Assembly (NCBI GenBank): GCA_950097015.1
Contig: CATNEN010000034.1
Location: 3,162,001-3,226,000, forward strand
Source of the DNA: Macrostomum hystrix
Taxonomy: Eukaryota; Animalia; Platyhelminthes
Length of the DNA stretch: 64,000 nucleotides
Reading direction: 5' to 3'
Shown here: piece by piece, positions 3,689 to 11,660 of the stretch
Layout of the letters: each line of letters begins with the position of its first letter
Position numbering within the stretch: the stretch's first letter is position 1
Position numbers and translations under genes: made by a program
Notes under the pieces: generated by a model
Told to the model about the DNA's origin: nothing
What the model saw: only the letters and a program-made list of their open reading frames with translations
Databases searched by the model: none

Positions 3689-3882
3689 GTGAGAGCTGAT
3701 ACAGGAGATGCTGACAATCTTTTTCACTTTTGAGATAATTCCAATGCCTAATTTGAAAAGTTTTAATGCTCTAATTAGGATTATTATAATGCGCTAATTA
3801 AGATAATTCCAATGCGCTTATTGGGATATTTCTAATGTGCTAATTGTGCTGATTCTAATGCGCTAATTGGCTAACTACACAG

Positions 3883-4975
3883 CTTTGGCGAGGAGCTTGG
3901 CGACTGGTGCTTCGGCCGGGCCTACCGCGGCGAGCTGATCGGCCTGCATTCGGCCAGCTCGCTGACGCCCGTGGCCATCCGCTGCCTGCGGGCCGGCGCT
4001 GACGCAGCCACCAGACGTCGCTTTCTGGCCGAATTCCACGCAATGGCCGAGGTCACGTCGGCGGGCGGCCATCCGAATCTGGTCCGGCTGCTGGGCGCCT
4101 CGTTGAGCCAGACGCCCTCGTGCGTCGTCACGGAGCTGGCCGCTGGGCGCGACCTGCACGAACTCCTCGTTGAAGCACGAGACAACAAAAACGCGGCGAC
4201 GTCCGCGGAGGAGGCCTACGACTGCGACGCCACCGAGCCGACATCCTGGCGGCTGCTCAGCCAGCACCAGATGCTGCACGCCGCCGCACAGGTGGCCTGC
4301 GCACTCGAGTACCTCGCCGACCGCGGCTTCGTCCATCGCGACGTCGCGGCCAGGAATGTCCAGGTGGACGCCGGCTTCGGCCACCTGCACTGCCGACTGG
4401 GCGATCTGGGCCAATGCCGGGACGCCTACTCGGCTGATTATTACCGGCTGCAGGTGTCACATGGCGGCGGCGGCGGCGGCGGCGGTGGCAGCTCTGGCAG
4501 CAGCGGCCGTCTGCCAATCCGCTGGATGCCGCCCGAGGCCATCCTGTTTGGCAGTTATTCGCCGCAGAGCGACGCCTACAGCCTGGGCGTCCTGCTCTGG
4601 GAGATCTGGTCGCTTGGCGCACAGCCATACAGCGGCCGCAGCAACAGCGCCGCCATCGATTTAATCAGGGCCAGGCGACTGTTGGCCTGCCCGGCCGAAT
4701 GTCCCGCCAGACTTTACGGCCTGATGCTGGGCCTGTGGGCGGATCCTGCGGCTGCCAGGCTGTCTGCGGGCAATGTTCGAGAGCAGTTGCGGCTGTGGCA
4801 CGCCGAGGAGCTGGCGATGCTGACGCCGATGCAGCCGCAGCCTCCGCTGACACCCGCAGGCGCGTCATCTTCGTCGGCGTCGTCTGCTTGTCTGATGCCG
4901 CCGCCACCACAGAAGCAGCAGCCACCTCAGCCGCCGATGTTTTCGTCCGGTTTTAGTACCTTCTTTCCGTATTGA
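3883..4975 (+). CDS. ROR: ROR-like tyrosine (pseudo)kinase domain, terminal exon
   Basis: Spliced IPLTRLR-FGEELGDWCFGRAYRGEL; HRDVAARN; DLG..RDAYSADYYR; LPIRWMPPEAI; WEIWSLGAQPY, all ROR-like; acceptor acacag|3883 (phase 2); AATAAA at 5064-5069. Confidence 0.92.
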
Positions 4976-5505: not shown

Positions 5506-5758
5506 AATATTAACCAAAGAAATGAGATCTTACATTCTAAGTCCTCAGATTTTCTTATTCGTAGCTTTTTAGGGTTCGATAACGTCTTTTTCGGTGTACA
5601 AGTGAACTCAGATTTATAAAAGACAATCAATAAAGCATTTTTAACAAGCAAATTTGTATTAAGTGCCAATAATTAGGTGGAGATTTCACTCCATTCTTTA
5701 AAAAGTTTTATTTAGATATATCAAACAATGGTCTCTTGAAAATAGTATAGTTAACCTG

Positions 5759-6055
5759 TTAACGCTTGCCAAACCTTGGCCTACTCATAGCGTGAAGGTA
5801 CTGATTGAGGTTTTTGATGTACTGGGCGGTAGCGGCGGCCTGGTTGTCATGGTAACCCGATGCCTCATTGCGCTTGCCAAACCTGGGTCGGCTAACGGAC
5901 TGGAAGTATTGATTAAGGTAGGCCAGGTAGTCCGACACGTCATCAGCCGAGTGGAATTCCTTCGGTGAGTTGTCAGGAATTTCGGCCATAGACTTTAACT
6001 GGGCCGGGGCAATAAGCGGCATGATTAGCAAAATCCAGTTGAAAATTTGAAGCAT
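5759..6055 (-). CDS. NPF: NPY/NPF-like neuropeptide precursor A (98 aa, two NPF-type peptides, intronless)
   Basis: Hydrophobic leader; two ...Y-x6-Y-x4-SRPRF-GKR units (Tyr at -10 and -17, amidation/cleavage signal GKR); AATAAA on - strand at 5707-5712. Confidence 0.93.
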   Translation of the reverse strand: MLQIFNWILLIMPLIAPAQLKSMAEIPDNSPKEFHSADDVSDYLAYLNQYFQSVSRPRFGKRNEASGYHDNQAAATAQYIKNLNQYLHAMSRPRFGKR

Positions 6056-6155
6056 ACTGCGGCCTTCTTATTGTGCTAACTTTCTTACTTGATTAACTTT
6101 TCGTCCAGTTTGGCTGCTATGAATGATTCTAGCTTGAATCAACACTAGCTATCTA

Positions 6156-6228
6156 TATTTATACTGGGGCGTCAGCTCTCTGTCTCAAACCTGTATCTCA
6201 TACCAATATTTTCATATCCTCTGATTGG
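6156..6228 (-). promoter_or_regulatory. Putative core promoter of NPF-A (TATA plus CCAAT)
   Basis: TATAAATA (6156-6163) ~100 nt upstream of the ATG; CCAAT (6224-6228). Confidence 0.55.
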
Positions 6229-6339
6229 ACAAATATACACTTACACAGTCAAGAGTGTGTTCCCACTACTCGGTCCCTCTCACAGATGGTCGTGACGAAG
6301 TTCTAGATCGAAACCATACCTGTCTGAGCTAAATTCTTG

Positions 6340-7640
6340 ACCCCGGGTGTGGGACGGCAGAGACACCCGGGTGTGGGACGGCAGAGACACCCGGGTGTGG
6401 GACGGCAGAGACACCCGGGTGTGGGACGGCAGAGACACCCGGGTGTGGGACGGCAGAGACACCCGGGTGTGGGATGGCAGAGACACCCGGGTGTGGGAGG
6501 GCAGATAAGAAATCTCACTAGATTCTAGACACCCGGGTGTGGCATGGCAGATAAGAAATCTCACTAGATTCTAGACACCCGGGTGTGGCATGGCAGATAA
6601 GAAATCTCACTAGATTCTAGACACCTGGGTGTGGCATGGCAGATAAGAAATCTCACTAGATTCTAGACACCCGGGTGTGGCATGGCAGATAAGAAATCTC
6701 ACTAGATTCTAGACACCCGGGTGTGGCATGGCAGATAAGAAATCTCACTAGATTCTAGACACCCGGGTGTGGGATGGCAGATAAGAAATCTCACTAGATT
6801 CTAGACACCCGGGTGTGGCATGGCAGATAAGAAATCTCACTAGATTCTAGACACCTGGGTGTGGCATGGCAGATAAGAAATCTCACTAGATTCTAGACAC
6901 CTGGGTGTGGCATGGCAGATAAGAAATCTCACTAGATTCTAGACACCCGGGTGTGGGAGGGCAGATAAGAAATCTCACTAGATTCTAGACACCCGGGTGT
7001 GGCATGGAAGATAAGAAATCTCACTAGATTCTAGACACCCGGGTGTGGGATGGCAGATAATAAATCTCACTAGATTCTAGACACCCGGGTGTGGGATGGC
7101 AGGTAAGAAATCTCACTAGATTCTAGACACCCGGGTGTGGGATGGCAGGTAAGAAATCTCACTAGATTCTAGACACCCGGGTGTAGCATGGAAGATAAGA
7201 AATCTCACTAGATTCTAGACACCCGGGTGTGGCATGGCAGATAAGAAATCTCACTAGATTCTAGACACCCGGGTGTGGCATGGCAGATAAGAAATCTCAC
7301 TAGATTCTAGACACCCGGGTGTGGCATGGCAGATAAGAAATCTCACTAGATTCTAGACACCTGGGTGTGGCATGGCAGATAAGAAATCTCACTAGATTCT
7401 AGACACCCGGGTGTGGGATGGCAGATAATAAATCTCACTAGATTCTAGACACCCGGGTGAAGGATGGCAGATAAGAAATCTCACTAGATTCTAGACAGCC
7501 GGGTGTGGCATGGCAGATAAGAAATCTCACTAGATTCTAGACACCCGGGAGTGGGATGGCAGATAATAAATCTCACTAGATTCTAGACACCCGGGAGTGG
7601 GATGGCAGATAATAAATCTCACTAGATTTTAGACACCTAA
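6340..7640. repeat. Composite minisatellite: ~6 x 24-bp then ~24 x 46-bp units
   Basis: gacacccgggtgtgggacggcaga (period 24) changes to gacacccgggtgtggcatggcagataagaaatctcactagattcta (period 46). Confidence 0.95.
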
Positions 7641-8074: not shown

Positions 8075-9962
8075 TTAGCTGCAGAAGCGGCAGCAGTAAA
8101 AGCAGATTATCAACACAAACAGCAGCAGTGAAAGCAGATTATCAACACAAACAGCAGCAGTGAAAGCAGATTATCAACACAAACAGCAGCAGTAAAAGCA
8201 GATTATCAACACAAACAGCAGCAGTGAAAGCAGATTATCAACACAAACAGCAGCAGTAAAAGCAGATTATCAACACAAACAGCAGCAGTGAAAGCAGATT
8301 ATCAACACAAACAGCAGCAGTAAAAGCAGATTATCAACACAAACAGAAGCAGTAAATGCAGATTATCAACACAAACAGCAGCAGAAAAAGCAGATTATCA
8401 ACACAAACAGCAGCAGTAAAAGCAGATTATCAACACAAACAGCAGCAGTGAAAGCAGATTATCAACACAAACAGCAGCAGTAAAAGCAGATTATCAACAC
8501 AAACAGCAGCAGTGAAAGCAGATTATCAACACAAACAGCAGCAGTAAAAGCAGATTATCAACACAAACAGAAGCAGTAAATGCAGATTATCAACACAAAC
8601 AGCAGCAGAAAAAGCAGATTATCAACACAAACAGCAGCAGTAAAAGCAGATTATCAACACAAACAGCAGCAGTAAAAGCAGATTATCAACACAAACAGCA
8701 GCAGTAAAAGCAGATTATCAACACAAACAGCAGCAGTAAAAGCAGATTATCAACACAAACAGCAGCAGTAAAAGCAGATTATCAACACAAACAGCAGCAG
8801 TAAAAGCAGATTATCAACACAAACAGCAGCAGTGAAAGCAGATTATCAACACAAACAGCAGCAGTAAAAGCAGATTATCAACACAAACAGCAGCAGTAAA
8901 AGCAGATTATCAACACAAACAGCAGCAGTAAAAGCAGATTATCAACACAAACAGCAGCAGTAAAAGCAGATTATCAACACAAACAGCAGCAGTGAAAGCA
9001 GATTATCAACACAAACAGCAGCAGTGAAAGCAGATTATCAACACAAACAGCAGCAGTGAAAGCAGATTATCAACACAAACAGCAGCAGTGAAAGCAGATT
9101 ATCAACACAAACAGCAGCAGTGAAAGCAGATTATCAACACAAACAGCAGCAGTAAAAGCAGATTATCAACACAAACAGCAGCAGTGAAAGCAGATTATCA
9201 ACACAAACAGCAGCAGTAAAAGCAGATTATCAACACAAACAGCAGCAGTGAAAGCAGATTATCAACACAAACAGCAGCAGTAAAAGCAGATTATCAACAC
9301 AAACAGAAGCAGTAAATGCAGATTATCAACACAAACAGCAGCAGAAAAAGCAGATTATCAACACAAACAGCAGCAGTAAAAGCAGATTATCAACACAAAC
9401 AGCAGCAGTGAAAGCAGATTATCAACACAAACAGCAGCAGTGAAAGCAGATTATCAACACAAACAGCAGCAGTAAAAGCAGATTATCAACACAAACAGCA
9501 GCAGTGAAAGCAGATTATCAACACAAACAGCAGCAGTAAAAGCAGATTATCAACACAAACAGCAGCAGTGAAAGCAGATTATCAACACAAACAGCAGCAG
9601 TAAAAGCAGATTATCAACACAAACAGCAGCAGTAAAAGCAGATTATCAACACAAACAGCAGCAGTAAAAGCAGATTATCAACACAAACAGCAGCAGAAAA
9701 AGCAGATTATCAACACAAACAGCAGCAGTAAAAGCAGATTATCAACACAAACAGCAGCAGTAAAAGCAGATTATCAACACAAACAGCAGCAGTAAATGCA
9801 GATTATCAACACAAACAGCAGCAGTAAAAGCAGATTATCAACACAAACAGCAGCAGTAAAAGCAGATTATCAACACAAACAGCAGCAGTAAAAGCAGATT
9901 ATCAACACAAACAGCAGCAGTAAAAGCAGATTATCAACACAAACAGCAGCAGTAAAAGCAGA
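8075..9962. repeat. 32-bp minisatellite (aaacagcagcagtaaaagcagattatcaacac), ~58 copies
   Basis: Direct periodicity. Confidence 0.97.
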
Positions 9963-10592
9963 TGATTTTCGACAGTGTTTCCTGCTATTGCTTGTAAGCT
10001 ATTGCAGTTTGATGTTGTAAAAAATAGGGGATAATTAACTGGCTTCAGACATCTCAGAACCTACAAGTAGTCAGGTTGTGTTCCAGCACCCCAAAGTAGG
10101 AAGGGACAACACTAATTTCCTTTCTTGGAAATAGAAACTTGGCTCTGATTATTATATTTTCTAAAAAAACTACTGTTTCCCGGACAAGGGCAGCGTTTGG
10201 CATCGAGTTATTTTTTAAACTGAATACTGTTAATTCAAGAAGGCACATATTTTAGTCGAAATCCTTTTTTTGTGAAATTATTCCCATAGCAGCTGTAGTT
10301 ACAAAAACAGCTCACAAGCTTTGAAAAGAAATAATTCAAAACATTGAAACAAAATTAGCATAACCGCATTATCCTGTGCTTCAAAATGTGCACTCAAACT
10401 ATTATACGAGCATATATTTGTCATCGTCAGAGCGAGAGACAGACAGATTTAAATCAGCTCAAAGCTCGCTTGATTTCTTGGGTCAGAAGAGACAGGTAGG
10501 GACAGGGCTCGCCAACACGACTTTCATCATTTCAAATTAAAAATTGTCCATCTATTATTTGATTTTCGCCTCTGAATCGTCGCTTAAAACAG

Positions 10593-11003
10593 TTAGTCGA
10601 AATGGTAGAGCCGCTTGCCGAAGCGAGGTCTGCTCATTGAGTGCAGGTACTGGTTGAGATTGTTGATGTACTCGGCCGCGGCGGCCGGCGTGTCGAAGGT
10701 CTTGCGCTTGCCGAAGCGGGGCCTGCTGACCGAGTGCAGGTACTGGTTGAGGCTCGTGACGTACTTGGCTGCGTCCGCGGGAGATCTGAAGTCGTAGGCG
10801 TAGGCGCCACCACCGGCGCGCTTACCGAATCGCGGCCGGCTAACGGAATGGAAGTACTGGTTCAGGTAGGCCAGGTAGTCGGCAACATCGTCGGCGGAGG
10901 TGAAGTCCTTGGATACCTCCTCGGGAGTCCGCGGCAGTGACTTGGTGTGGCCCAGGGCGAGGGCCGACAGAAGCAGAATTAGCAGGCTGGACAGTGGCGC
11001 CAT
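10593..11003 (-). CDS. NPF: NPY/NPF-like neuropeptide precursor B (136 aa, three NPF-type peptides, intronless)
   Basis: ATG at 11003, signal peptide MAPLSSLLILLLSALALG; three Y-x6-Y-x4-SRPRF-GKR units; short C-terminal LYHFD. Confidence 0.95.
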   Translation of the reverse strand: MAPLSSLLILLLSALALGHTKSLPRTPEEVSKDFTSADDVADYLAYLNQYFHSVSRPRFGKRAGGGAYAYDFRSPADAAKYVTSLNQYLHSVSRPRFGKRKTFDTPAAAAEYINNLNQYLHSMSRPRFGKRLYHFD

Positions 11004-11309: not shown

Positions 11310-11660
11310 TCTTAGTGTCATGTCCATCTAAGTAGTGTCATGCTCATATAATTAGTGTCATGTTCATGCCCTCTTAGTGTCATGTTCATGCCCTCTTAGT
11401 GTCATGTTCATGCCCTCTTAGTGTCATGTTCATCTTGGTGTGATGTCCATCTGAGTATCATGTCCATCGTGGTGCCATGTCCATCTTACTGTCATGTCCA
11501 TCTTACTGTCATGTCCGTCGTGGTGTCATGTCCATCTTACTGTCATGTCCGTCGTGGTGTCATGTCCATCTTAGTGTCATGTCTATCTAAGTAGTGTCTT
11601 GCTCATATAATTAGTGTCATGTTCATGCCCTCTTGGTGTCATGTTCATCTTAGTGTCAAG
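11310..11660. repeat. Imperfect ~17-23-bp repeat (tagtgtcatgtccatct-like)
   Basis: Recurring gtgtcatgt core. Confidence 0.85.

Follow-up and report, generated by a model that had tools for sequence, protein, structure and literature searches.

The open reading frame at positions 5759-6055 (minus strand) of the window, the 64,000-nt stretch of Macrostomum hystrix DNA analyzed here, is very probably a functional, single-exon and independently transcribed Macrostomum gene for two NPF peptides; it is referred to below as gene A. The sequence-only reading had presented it as an independently expressed bi-NPF prohormone. The analysis supports a separate gene encoding two NPF-type peptides, the expression of which is presumed. 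Gene A represents an unusual layout of a well-known hormone family and is no new kind of system.

The reading frame comprises 98 codons, from ATG to TAA, with no intron. A genome-wide search showed it to be intact and present in a single copy, with a 100% match to itself only. The Pfam profile PF00159 (Hormone_3; NPY/PP/NPF) matched the whole gene A protein twice (63.2 bits, E 2.3e-17), and the amidation and cleavage signals are intact, in agreement with the bi-NPF description. Analyzed alone, unit 1 scored 42 bits over profile positions 6-36, which is above the cut-off of 28.7 bits, and unit 2 scored 26.9 bits (E 5e-6) over positions 10-36, just under the cut-off; compared with unit 1, unit 2 is N-terminally shortened and proline-free. 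For the protein of gene A and for that of its paralogue in the window, gene B, no exact-sequence match was found in a collection of 15 billion proteins.

The N-terminus of the precursor (residues 1-22; 5990-6055, minus strand) is predicted to be a cleavable signal peptide, on the basis of hydropathy, the -3/-1 rule and alignment with the leaders of paralogues and orthologues. Its hydrophobic core spans residues 4-16. A leader of 22 residues had been proposed: cleavage after residue 22 (L-K-S/M) is indeed allowed, but the -3/-1 rule also permits cleavage after residue 18 (A-P-A/Q) or 24. Of the two peptide lengths suggested at the same time, about 37 and 33 aa, the second stood, and the first became a predicted range of 37-41 aa, set by the choice of the leader cleavage site.

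Unit 1, of type U1, covers residues 23-59 (5879-5989, minus strand), was assigned by Pfam and by identity to unit 1 of gene B, carries two prolines in its N-terminal part and ends with RPRF at 5879-5890 (minus strand). It is followed by Gly-Lys-Arg (codons GGC AAG CGC; 5870-5878, minus strand), which provides an amidation donor and a dibasic site. Unit 2, of type U3, covers residues 63-95 (5771-5869, minus strand), was assigned by Pfam and by identity to unit 3 of gene B, and ends with RPRF at 5771-5782 (minus strand). Its terminal Gly-Lys-Arg is followed directly by TAA (5759-5770, minus strand). The precursor anatomy was therefore as first described: two units each ending in G-K-R, the stop codon right after the second, no C-terminal flanking peptide, and, in each peptide, a tyrosine at -10 and another at -17 counted from the final Phe. 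These tyrosines, Tyr20 and Tyr27 in NPY numbering, are a hallmark of flatworm NPF. Both units end in RPRF-G-K-R, in line with the pattern R-x-R-F/Y followed by Gly and a basic site. When 14 units of the gene family were aligned, only Tyr20, Leu24, Tyr27 and R-P-R-F-G were invariant.

We infer transcription, processing, amidation and receptor action of gene A, the processing scheme being drawn from established prohormone biochemistry. The 98-residue product would enter the secretory pathway via its N-terminal signal peptide, which would then be removed; a prohormone convertase would cut behind the internal Lys-Arg, and a carboxypeptidase would trim Lys-Arg at both C-termini. Since the protein ends at the second GKR, no endoproteolytic cut should be needed there, only trimming. 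Peptidylglycine amidating monooxygenase would then use the exposed Gly residues to amidate both C-termini. The expected products are a 37-41-residue U1 peptide and a 33-residue, N-terminally shortened U3 peptide, both with an RPRF-amide end; each would form an amphipathic helix bearing the two tyrosines of the family and would presumably act on NPF/NPY-type G-protein-coupled receptors. The monoisotopic masses calculated for the amidated products are 4335.03 Da for a 37-mer, 4791.30 Da (free) or 4774.28 Da (pyroGlu) for a 41-mer, and 3777.82 Da for the 33-mer.

Gene B (10593-11003, minus strand) is located 4.5 kb upstream of gene A on the same strand and encodes an intronless three-unit NPF prohormone (three Hormone_3 matches, E 7e-29). 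The two genes belong to one subfamily and resemble each other in promoter layout, in the leader and in having no intron; gene B differs by a middle U2 unit and a five-residue C-terminal tail, by an evolution about three times slower and by a higher GC3 (values below). The orthologue of gene B in Macrostomum lignano is located at L006 1930-2421 (Mlig009822).

On the other side of gene A, the last exon of a ROR-like receptor tyrosine kinase gene, which encodes the kinase domain, was found at 3875-4975 (plus strand; PK_Tyr, 188 bits). The gene had been described as convergent with gene A, and this was confirmed: the stop of the kinase reading frame is at 4975, 783 bp from gene A. The best solved relatives of the kinase exon are ROR1 (3.9e-56) and ROR2 (5.5e-51), and an upstream exon gave a weak match to the Fz domain, which makes the label ROR-like reasonable. 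The kinase reading frame (3971-4975, plus strand) contains a run of nine Gly and, behind it, a Ser/Gly stretch, immediately ahead of the conserved P-I-R-W-M-P-P-E segment; this is an insertion that is unusual for the activation-loop region.

The same genes occur in the same order and orientation on M. lignano contig NIVC01000624.1 (L006): a three-unit gene, a match to gene A and a convergent kinase. Over 323 aa, the kinase exon shares 73% identity with L006 12269-11370 (minus strand), and further exons of the kinase gene are collinear between the window and L006. The shared order and orientation make Mlig007142/Mlig003006 the positional orthologue of gene A, and the conserved synteny implies that the A/B duplication is older than the split between M. 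hystrix and M. lignano. A word-based homologue search with gene A retrieved only two M. lignano proteins, with 58-59% identity. Mlig007142/Mlig003006 (PAA79627.1, PAA66725.1, PAA75755.1), with 58% identity to gene A, are like it intronless, with U1 followed by U3 and with equal flanking genes. The advance made here is modest in that the M. lignano orthologues are already in public databases, entered as hypothetical proteins or under automatic names; the UniProt entry A0A267G2R3 carries the automatic name 'Neuropeptide Y'.

Gene A had been credited with its own TATA box and poly(A) signal, and both were located. The TATA box (TATAAAT; 6157-6163, minus strand) precedes the ATG by 108 nt, and comparable boxes lie at -98 in gene B, at -110 in gene D, and at -124 and -77 in the M. 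lignano genes. A CCAAT box is found at -173; the CCAAT-box 12-mer (6219-6230, minus strand) is an exact match to the promoter of the M. lignano orthologue. A word of this length common to both promoters was reached in 6 of 2000 shuffles, and it has been kept although the synonymous divergence between the two genes is greater than 1. The layout of TATA and CCAAT boxes is common to other members of the family. An AATAAA poly(A) signal (5707-5712, minus strand) is located 47 nt past the stop codon. These three elements fit an independent transcription unit.

It is extremely improbable that gene A is instead part of a gene B transcript, either as a cistron further downstream or as an alternative 3' exon. 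Such an arrangement would agree with the common strand of the two genes and the 4.5 kb between them, with the absence of a canonical AATAAA within 400 nt of the gene B stop codon, and with spliced-leader trans-splicing, which PMC10468722 attributes to Macrostomum, an AG being located 1 nt before the gene A ATG. However, gene A carries TATA and CCAAT boxes of its own, placed as in the rest of the family, together with a complete leader and a start codon, and the M. lignano annotation treats the orthologue of gene A as a gene in its own right. The spacer itself also argues against co-transcription, since about 3.2 kb of it consist of three tandem arrays: a 24-bp unit repeated 6.8 times (6342-6505), a 46-bp unit repeated 25 times (6481-7637) and a strongly A-skewed 32-bp unit repeated 58.6 times (8090-9963). 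An independently transcribed gene A remains the preferred reading.

With regard to the repeats themselves, translated pieces of the 24-bp array match a repeat just 3' of the M. lignano orthologue (L006 10740-11024). Further short tandem arrays, with units of 17-34 bp, are present at 11313-11500 of the window, about 300-500 bp upstream of the gene B start codon.

Selection on gene A was estimated by the Nei-Gojobori method; the cores are the 55 codons of the helix plus RPRFGKR of both units. In the comparison with the M. lignano orthologue, where dS (1.18 for the whole gene) is near saturation and the ratios are consequently rough, dN/dS was 0.36 for the whole gene, 0.13 for the core codons (Fisher p 1.3e-7) and 0.95 for the leader, the N-terminal parts and the spacer. 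The core of unit 2, with a dN/dS of 0.075, is the more constrained of the two gene A units. A ratio near 1 relative to gene B had been named in advance as the mark of a decaying pseudogene; the ratio obtained was 0.22 for the whole gene, and in the 55 core codons a pN of 0.078 stood against a saturated pS of 0.75 (p 8e-16). Gene B compared with its own M. lignano orthologue, with the same caution as to saturation, gave dN/dS values of 0.125 for the whole gene, 0.05 for the cores and 0.22 for the leader, N-terminal and spacer regions, which are thus constrained. GC3 is 0.64 in gene A and 0.82 in gene B; the lower value could reflect a lower expression of gene A. These comparisons indicate that gene A is selectively maintained and is no pseudogene, its cores being under purifying selection.

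The opposite view, in which gene A would be a copy of gene B that is silent or in decay, a young pseudogene with a still open reading frame, is very improbable. It could draw on the faster evolution and lower GC3 of gene A, on the loss of its C-terminal tail, and on a degenerate copy in M. lignano, with units ending LSRF and RPRY, which shows that such copies can decay. Yet the conserved synteny dates the duplication to before the divergence from M. lignano, and the RPRFGKR signals, the tyrosine pairs and the reading frame are intact in spite of the saturation of synonymous sites between the two paralogues. The low dN/dS in the cores, and above all in unit 2, and the conserved promoter word are likewise at odds with decay and in line with a functional gene.

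The near-neutral N-terminal halves suggest that the activity is carried by the helix and the amidated end. Gene A shows in this way where selection on the peptides persists: in the RPRF-amide end and the helix of the C-terminal part, and not in the N-terminal half. This could be taken further, to a real gene whose active products are effectively short: the last 20-26 residues (helix plus RPRF-amide) would matter, the N-terminal halves would be spacers, and the peptides would have ceased to function as folded 'long' NPF/NPY molecules. We consider this version unlikely, although it is the least improbable of the alternatives. In its favor are the contrast in dN/dS between the leader, N-terminal and spacer codons and the cores, the lack of proline in unit 2, with its match restricted to profile positions 10-36, and the structure model of gene A, which has low confidence (pLDDT 60.8) and consists of isolated helices at residues 37-54 and 70-90 with an unpacked N-terminal segment. 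In the PP-fold, a peptide of 36-40 residues has its proline-containing N-terminal segment folded back on the helix; unit 1 (37-41 aa) has two prolines and unit 2 (33 aa) has none. On the other hand, unit 1 keeps these prolines and matches profile positions 6-36, the matching regions of paralogue B are constrained, and dN is inflated by alignment error in divergent regions. In addition, inspection of the sequence revealed no basic cleavage site inside either unit, so that the peptides released would keep a length of 33-41 residues.

Units were typed by comparison of the 19 residues preceding RPRF. Unit 1 of gene A is identical to unit 1 of gene B at 17 of these 19 positions and to that of its own M. 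lignano orthologue at 13. Unit 2 of gene A shares 14 of 19 residues with unit 3 of gene B, 10 with unit 2 of gene B, and 14 with units 2 and 3 of the M. lignano orthologue. Gene A is accordingly composed of U1+U3 and gene B of U1+U2+U3. The higher identity of unit 1 to the paralogue than to the orthologue had raised the possibility of a recent gene conversion between A and B, which was ruled out by the saturation of the synonymous sites (pS 0.74-0.76).

Two more intronless genes of this kind were found in the genome, both on the plus strand: one on contig 38 (C38:10193169-10193393; L003 1381-1725), composed of U1+U2, and one on contig 5 (C5:5302711-5302866; L005 about 1426-1803), with two divergent units. 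Both precursors end RPRFG-stop, that is, at the amidation donor, and would need no C-terminal trimming. M. lignano Mlig025228 (P0005/P0029) likewise ends RPRFG-stop, so that an end at the amidation signal is conserved across all three genes, which speaks for a functional gene A.

The M. lignano orthologue of gene A has the composition U1+U3+U3 in all three genomic copies (L006 10001-10426, L007 9001-9426 and L008 9001-9426), each with a reading frame of 141 codons. It differs from gene A, with its two units and no tail, by this extra U3 unit and by an 8-residue C-terminal tail. The extra unit is a recent one; it is 99 nt long and shows two synonymous differences from its twin; in the L008 copy it reads RPHF instead of RPRF. 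The 108-aa models of the databases splice out the 99-nt unit as an 'intron'. The degenerate M. lignano copy mentioned above is a third, two-unit NPF gene located between the two others (L006 about 6055-6366, plus strand), with a dN/dS of 0.42 relative to the three-unit gene. No TATA or CCAAT box was found in the 300 nt upstream of it, and no counterpart of it was found in the window. Taken together, these compositions point to repeated gain and loss of whole peptide units in the Macrostomum subfamily, and the two-unit U1+U3 arrangement would most simply be the older state of the gene A lineage.

The frequency of multi-unit precursors was assessed with a profile of the 14 units in a search of 1.84 billion representative proteins, which yielded 26 matches at E <= 0.001. 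Real two- or three-unit proteins among them were three M. lignano clusters, one metagenome ORF and one krill model. Of the others, P0012-P0015 proved to be precursors with one unit, and the remaining short matches likewise lie in one stretch; the long matches in several stretches (P0006, P0009-P0011, P0020 and P0022), which cover positions 4-30 only, were taken for low-complexity noise. The krill protein, 'Neuropeptide F' of Meganyctiphanes norvegica (CAL4093327.1), resembles gene A in having several complete NPF units, three in this case. Its model spans 48 kb and must be multi-exon, unlike the intronless gene A. The metagenome ORF, on the 334-kb contig ENA ERZ25767047:ctg37439 (L009 3001-3609), is intronless and has two units, ending SRPRFGR and GRPRFGR. 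In both precursors, as in gene A, the units are separated by Gly plus basic sites, but they are of the GRPRF type, unlike those of gene A, and the two layouts look like independent inventions. The multi-unit layout of NPF is thus unusual, not unique. A description of multi-copy Macrostomum NPF was not found in the openly searchable literature. In Thiel et al. 2018, M. lignano is included in Figure 2, and the sequences in the NPY/F panel of the supplement are from Schmidtea and human.

NPY/NPF is among the best-conserved hormone families of bilaterians, and its gene structure serves as an orthology criterion. The hallmarks of these genes are a single peptide beside the signal peptide, a C-flanking peptide (CPON), and a phase-2 intron that splits the codon of the penultimate residue, Arg (PMC7314547, PMC2953531). 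Gene A departs from this layout in three respects: it encodes two peptides, has no C-flanking peptide and lacks the phase-2 intron, AGG TTT being contiguous in both units.

A six-frame census of the genome with PF00159 gave 19 matches. Profile position 36 is reached only by the units of gene A, gene B and the contig-38 gene. In the other 12 loci the match ends at profile positions 34 or 35, and there, precisely at phase 2 within the Arg codon, the sequence reads AG/GT in 11 of the 12 and AG/GC in one. These 12 canonical single-unit loci (L010-L013, L015, L016, L020-L024, L027) have exons ending R-x-R, RQR and RPR types among them. The genome thus contains a canonical NPF/NPY set and, separate from it, an intronless multi-unit subfamily without the canonical C-flanking peptide (gene B has its five-residue tail).

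The best match of gene A among solved structures is Moniezia expansa NPF (PDB 1K8V). Like gene A, the canonical flatworm NPFs (1K8V; Schmidtea mediterranea npy-1 to npy-11) have an RPRF-amide end, Tyr at -10 and -17, a helical C-terminal half, and Gly plus a dibasic site as the processing signal. The canonical flatworm genes, in contrast, encode one peptide with a C-flanking peptide and have the intron in the Arg codon, whereas gene A encodes two peptides and has neither of the other features.

In the gene A subfamily the conserved intron and the C-flanking peptide have probably been lost, and whole peptide units multiplied or dropped. There is perhaps an even chance that the genes found here, at least four, make up a lineage-specific Macrostomum NPF subfamily of intronless, CPON-less poly-peptide precursors, with gain and loss of units like that of FMRFamide-type multi-copy precursors, in which the separately constrained peptides of gene A may address different receptors. 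The twelve canonical genes beside the intronless subfamily provide a natural case of a single-peptide gene becoming multi-copy. In planarians NPY-8 controls germline maturation (PMC2953531), which makes the NPF peptides of Macrostomum candidate ligands in this model of reproduction and regeneration. Among the canonical loci, two on contig 34 (838587 and 840963) are only 2.4 kb apart.
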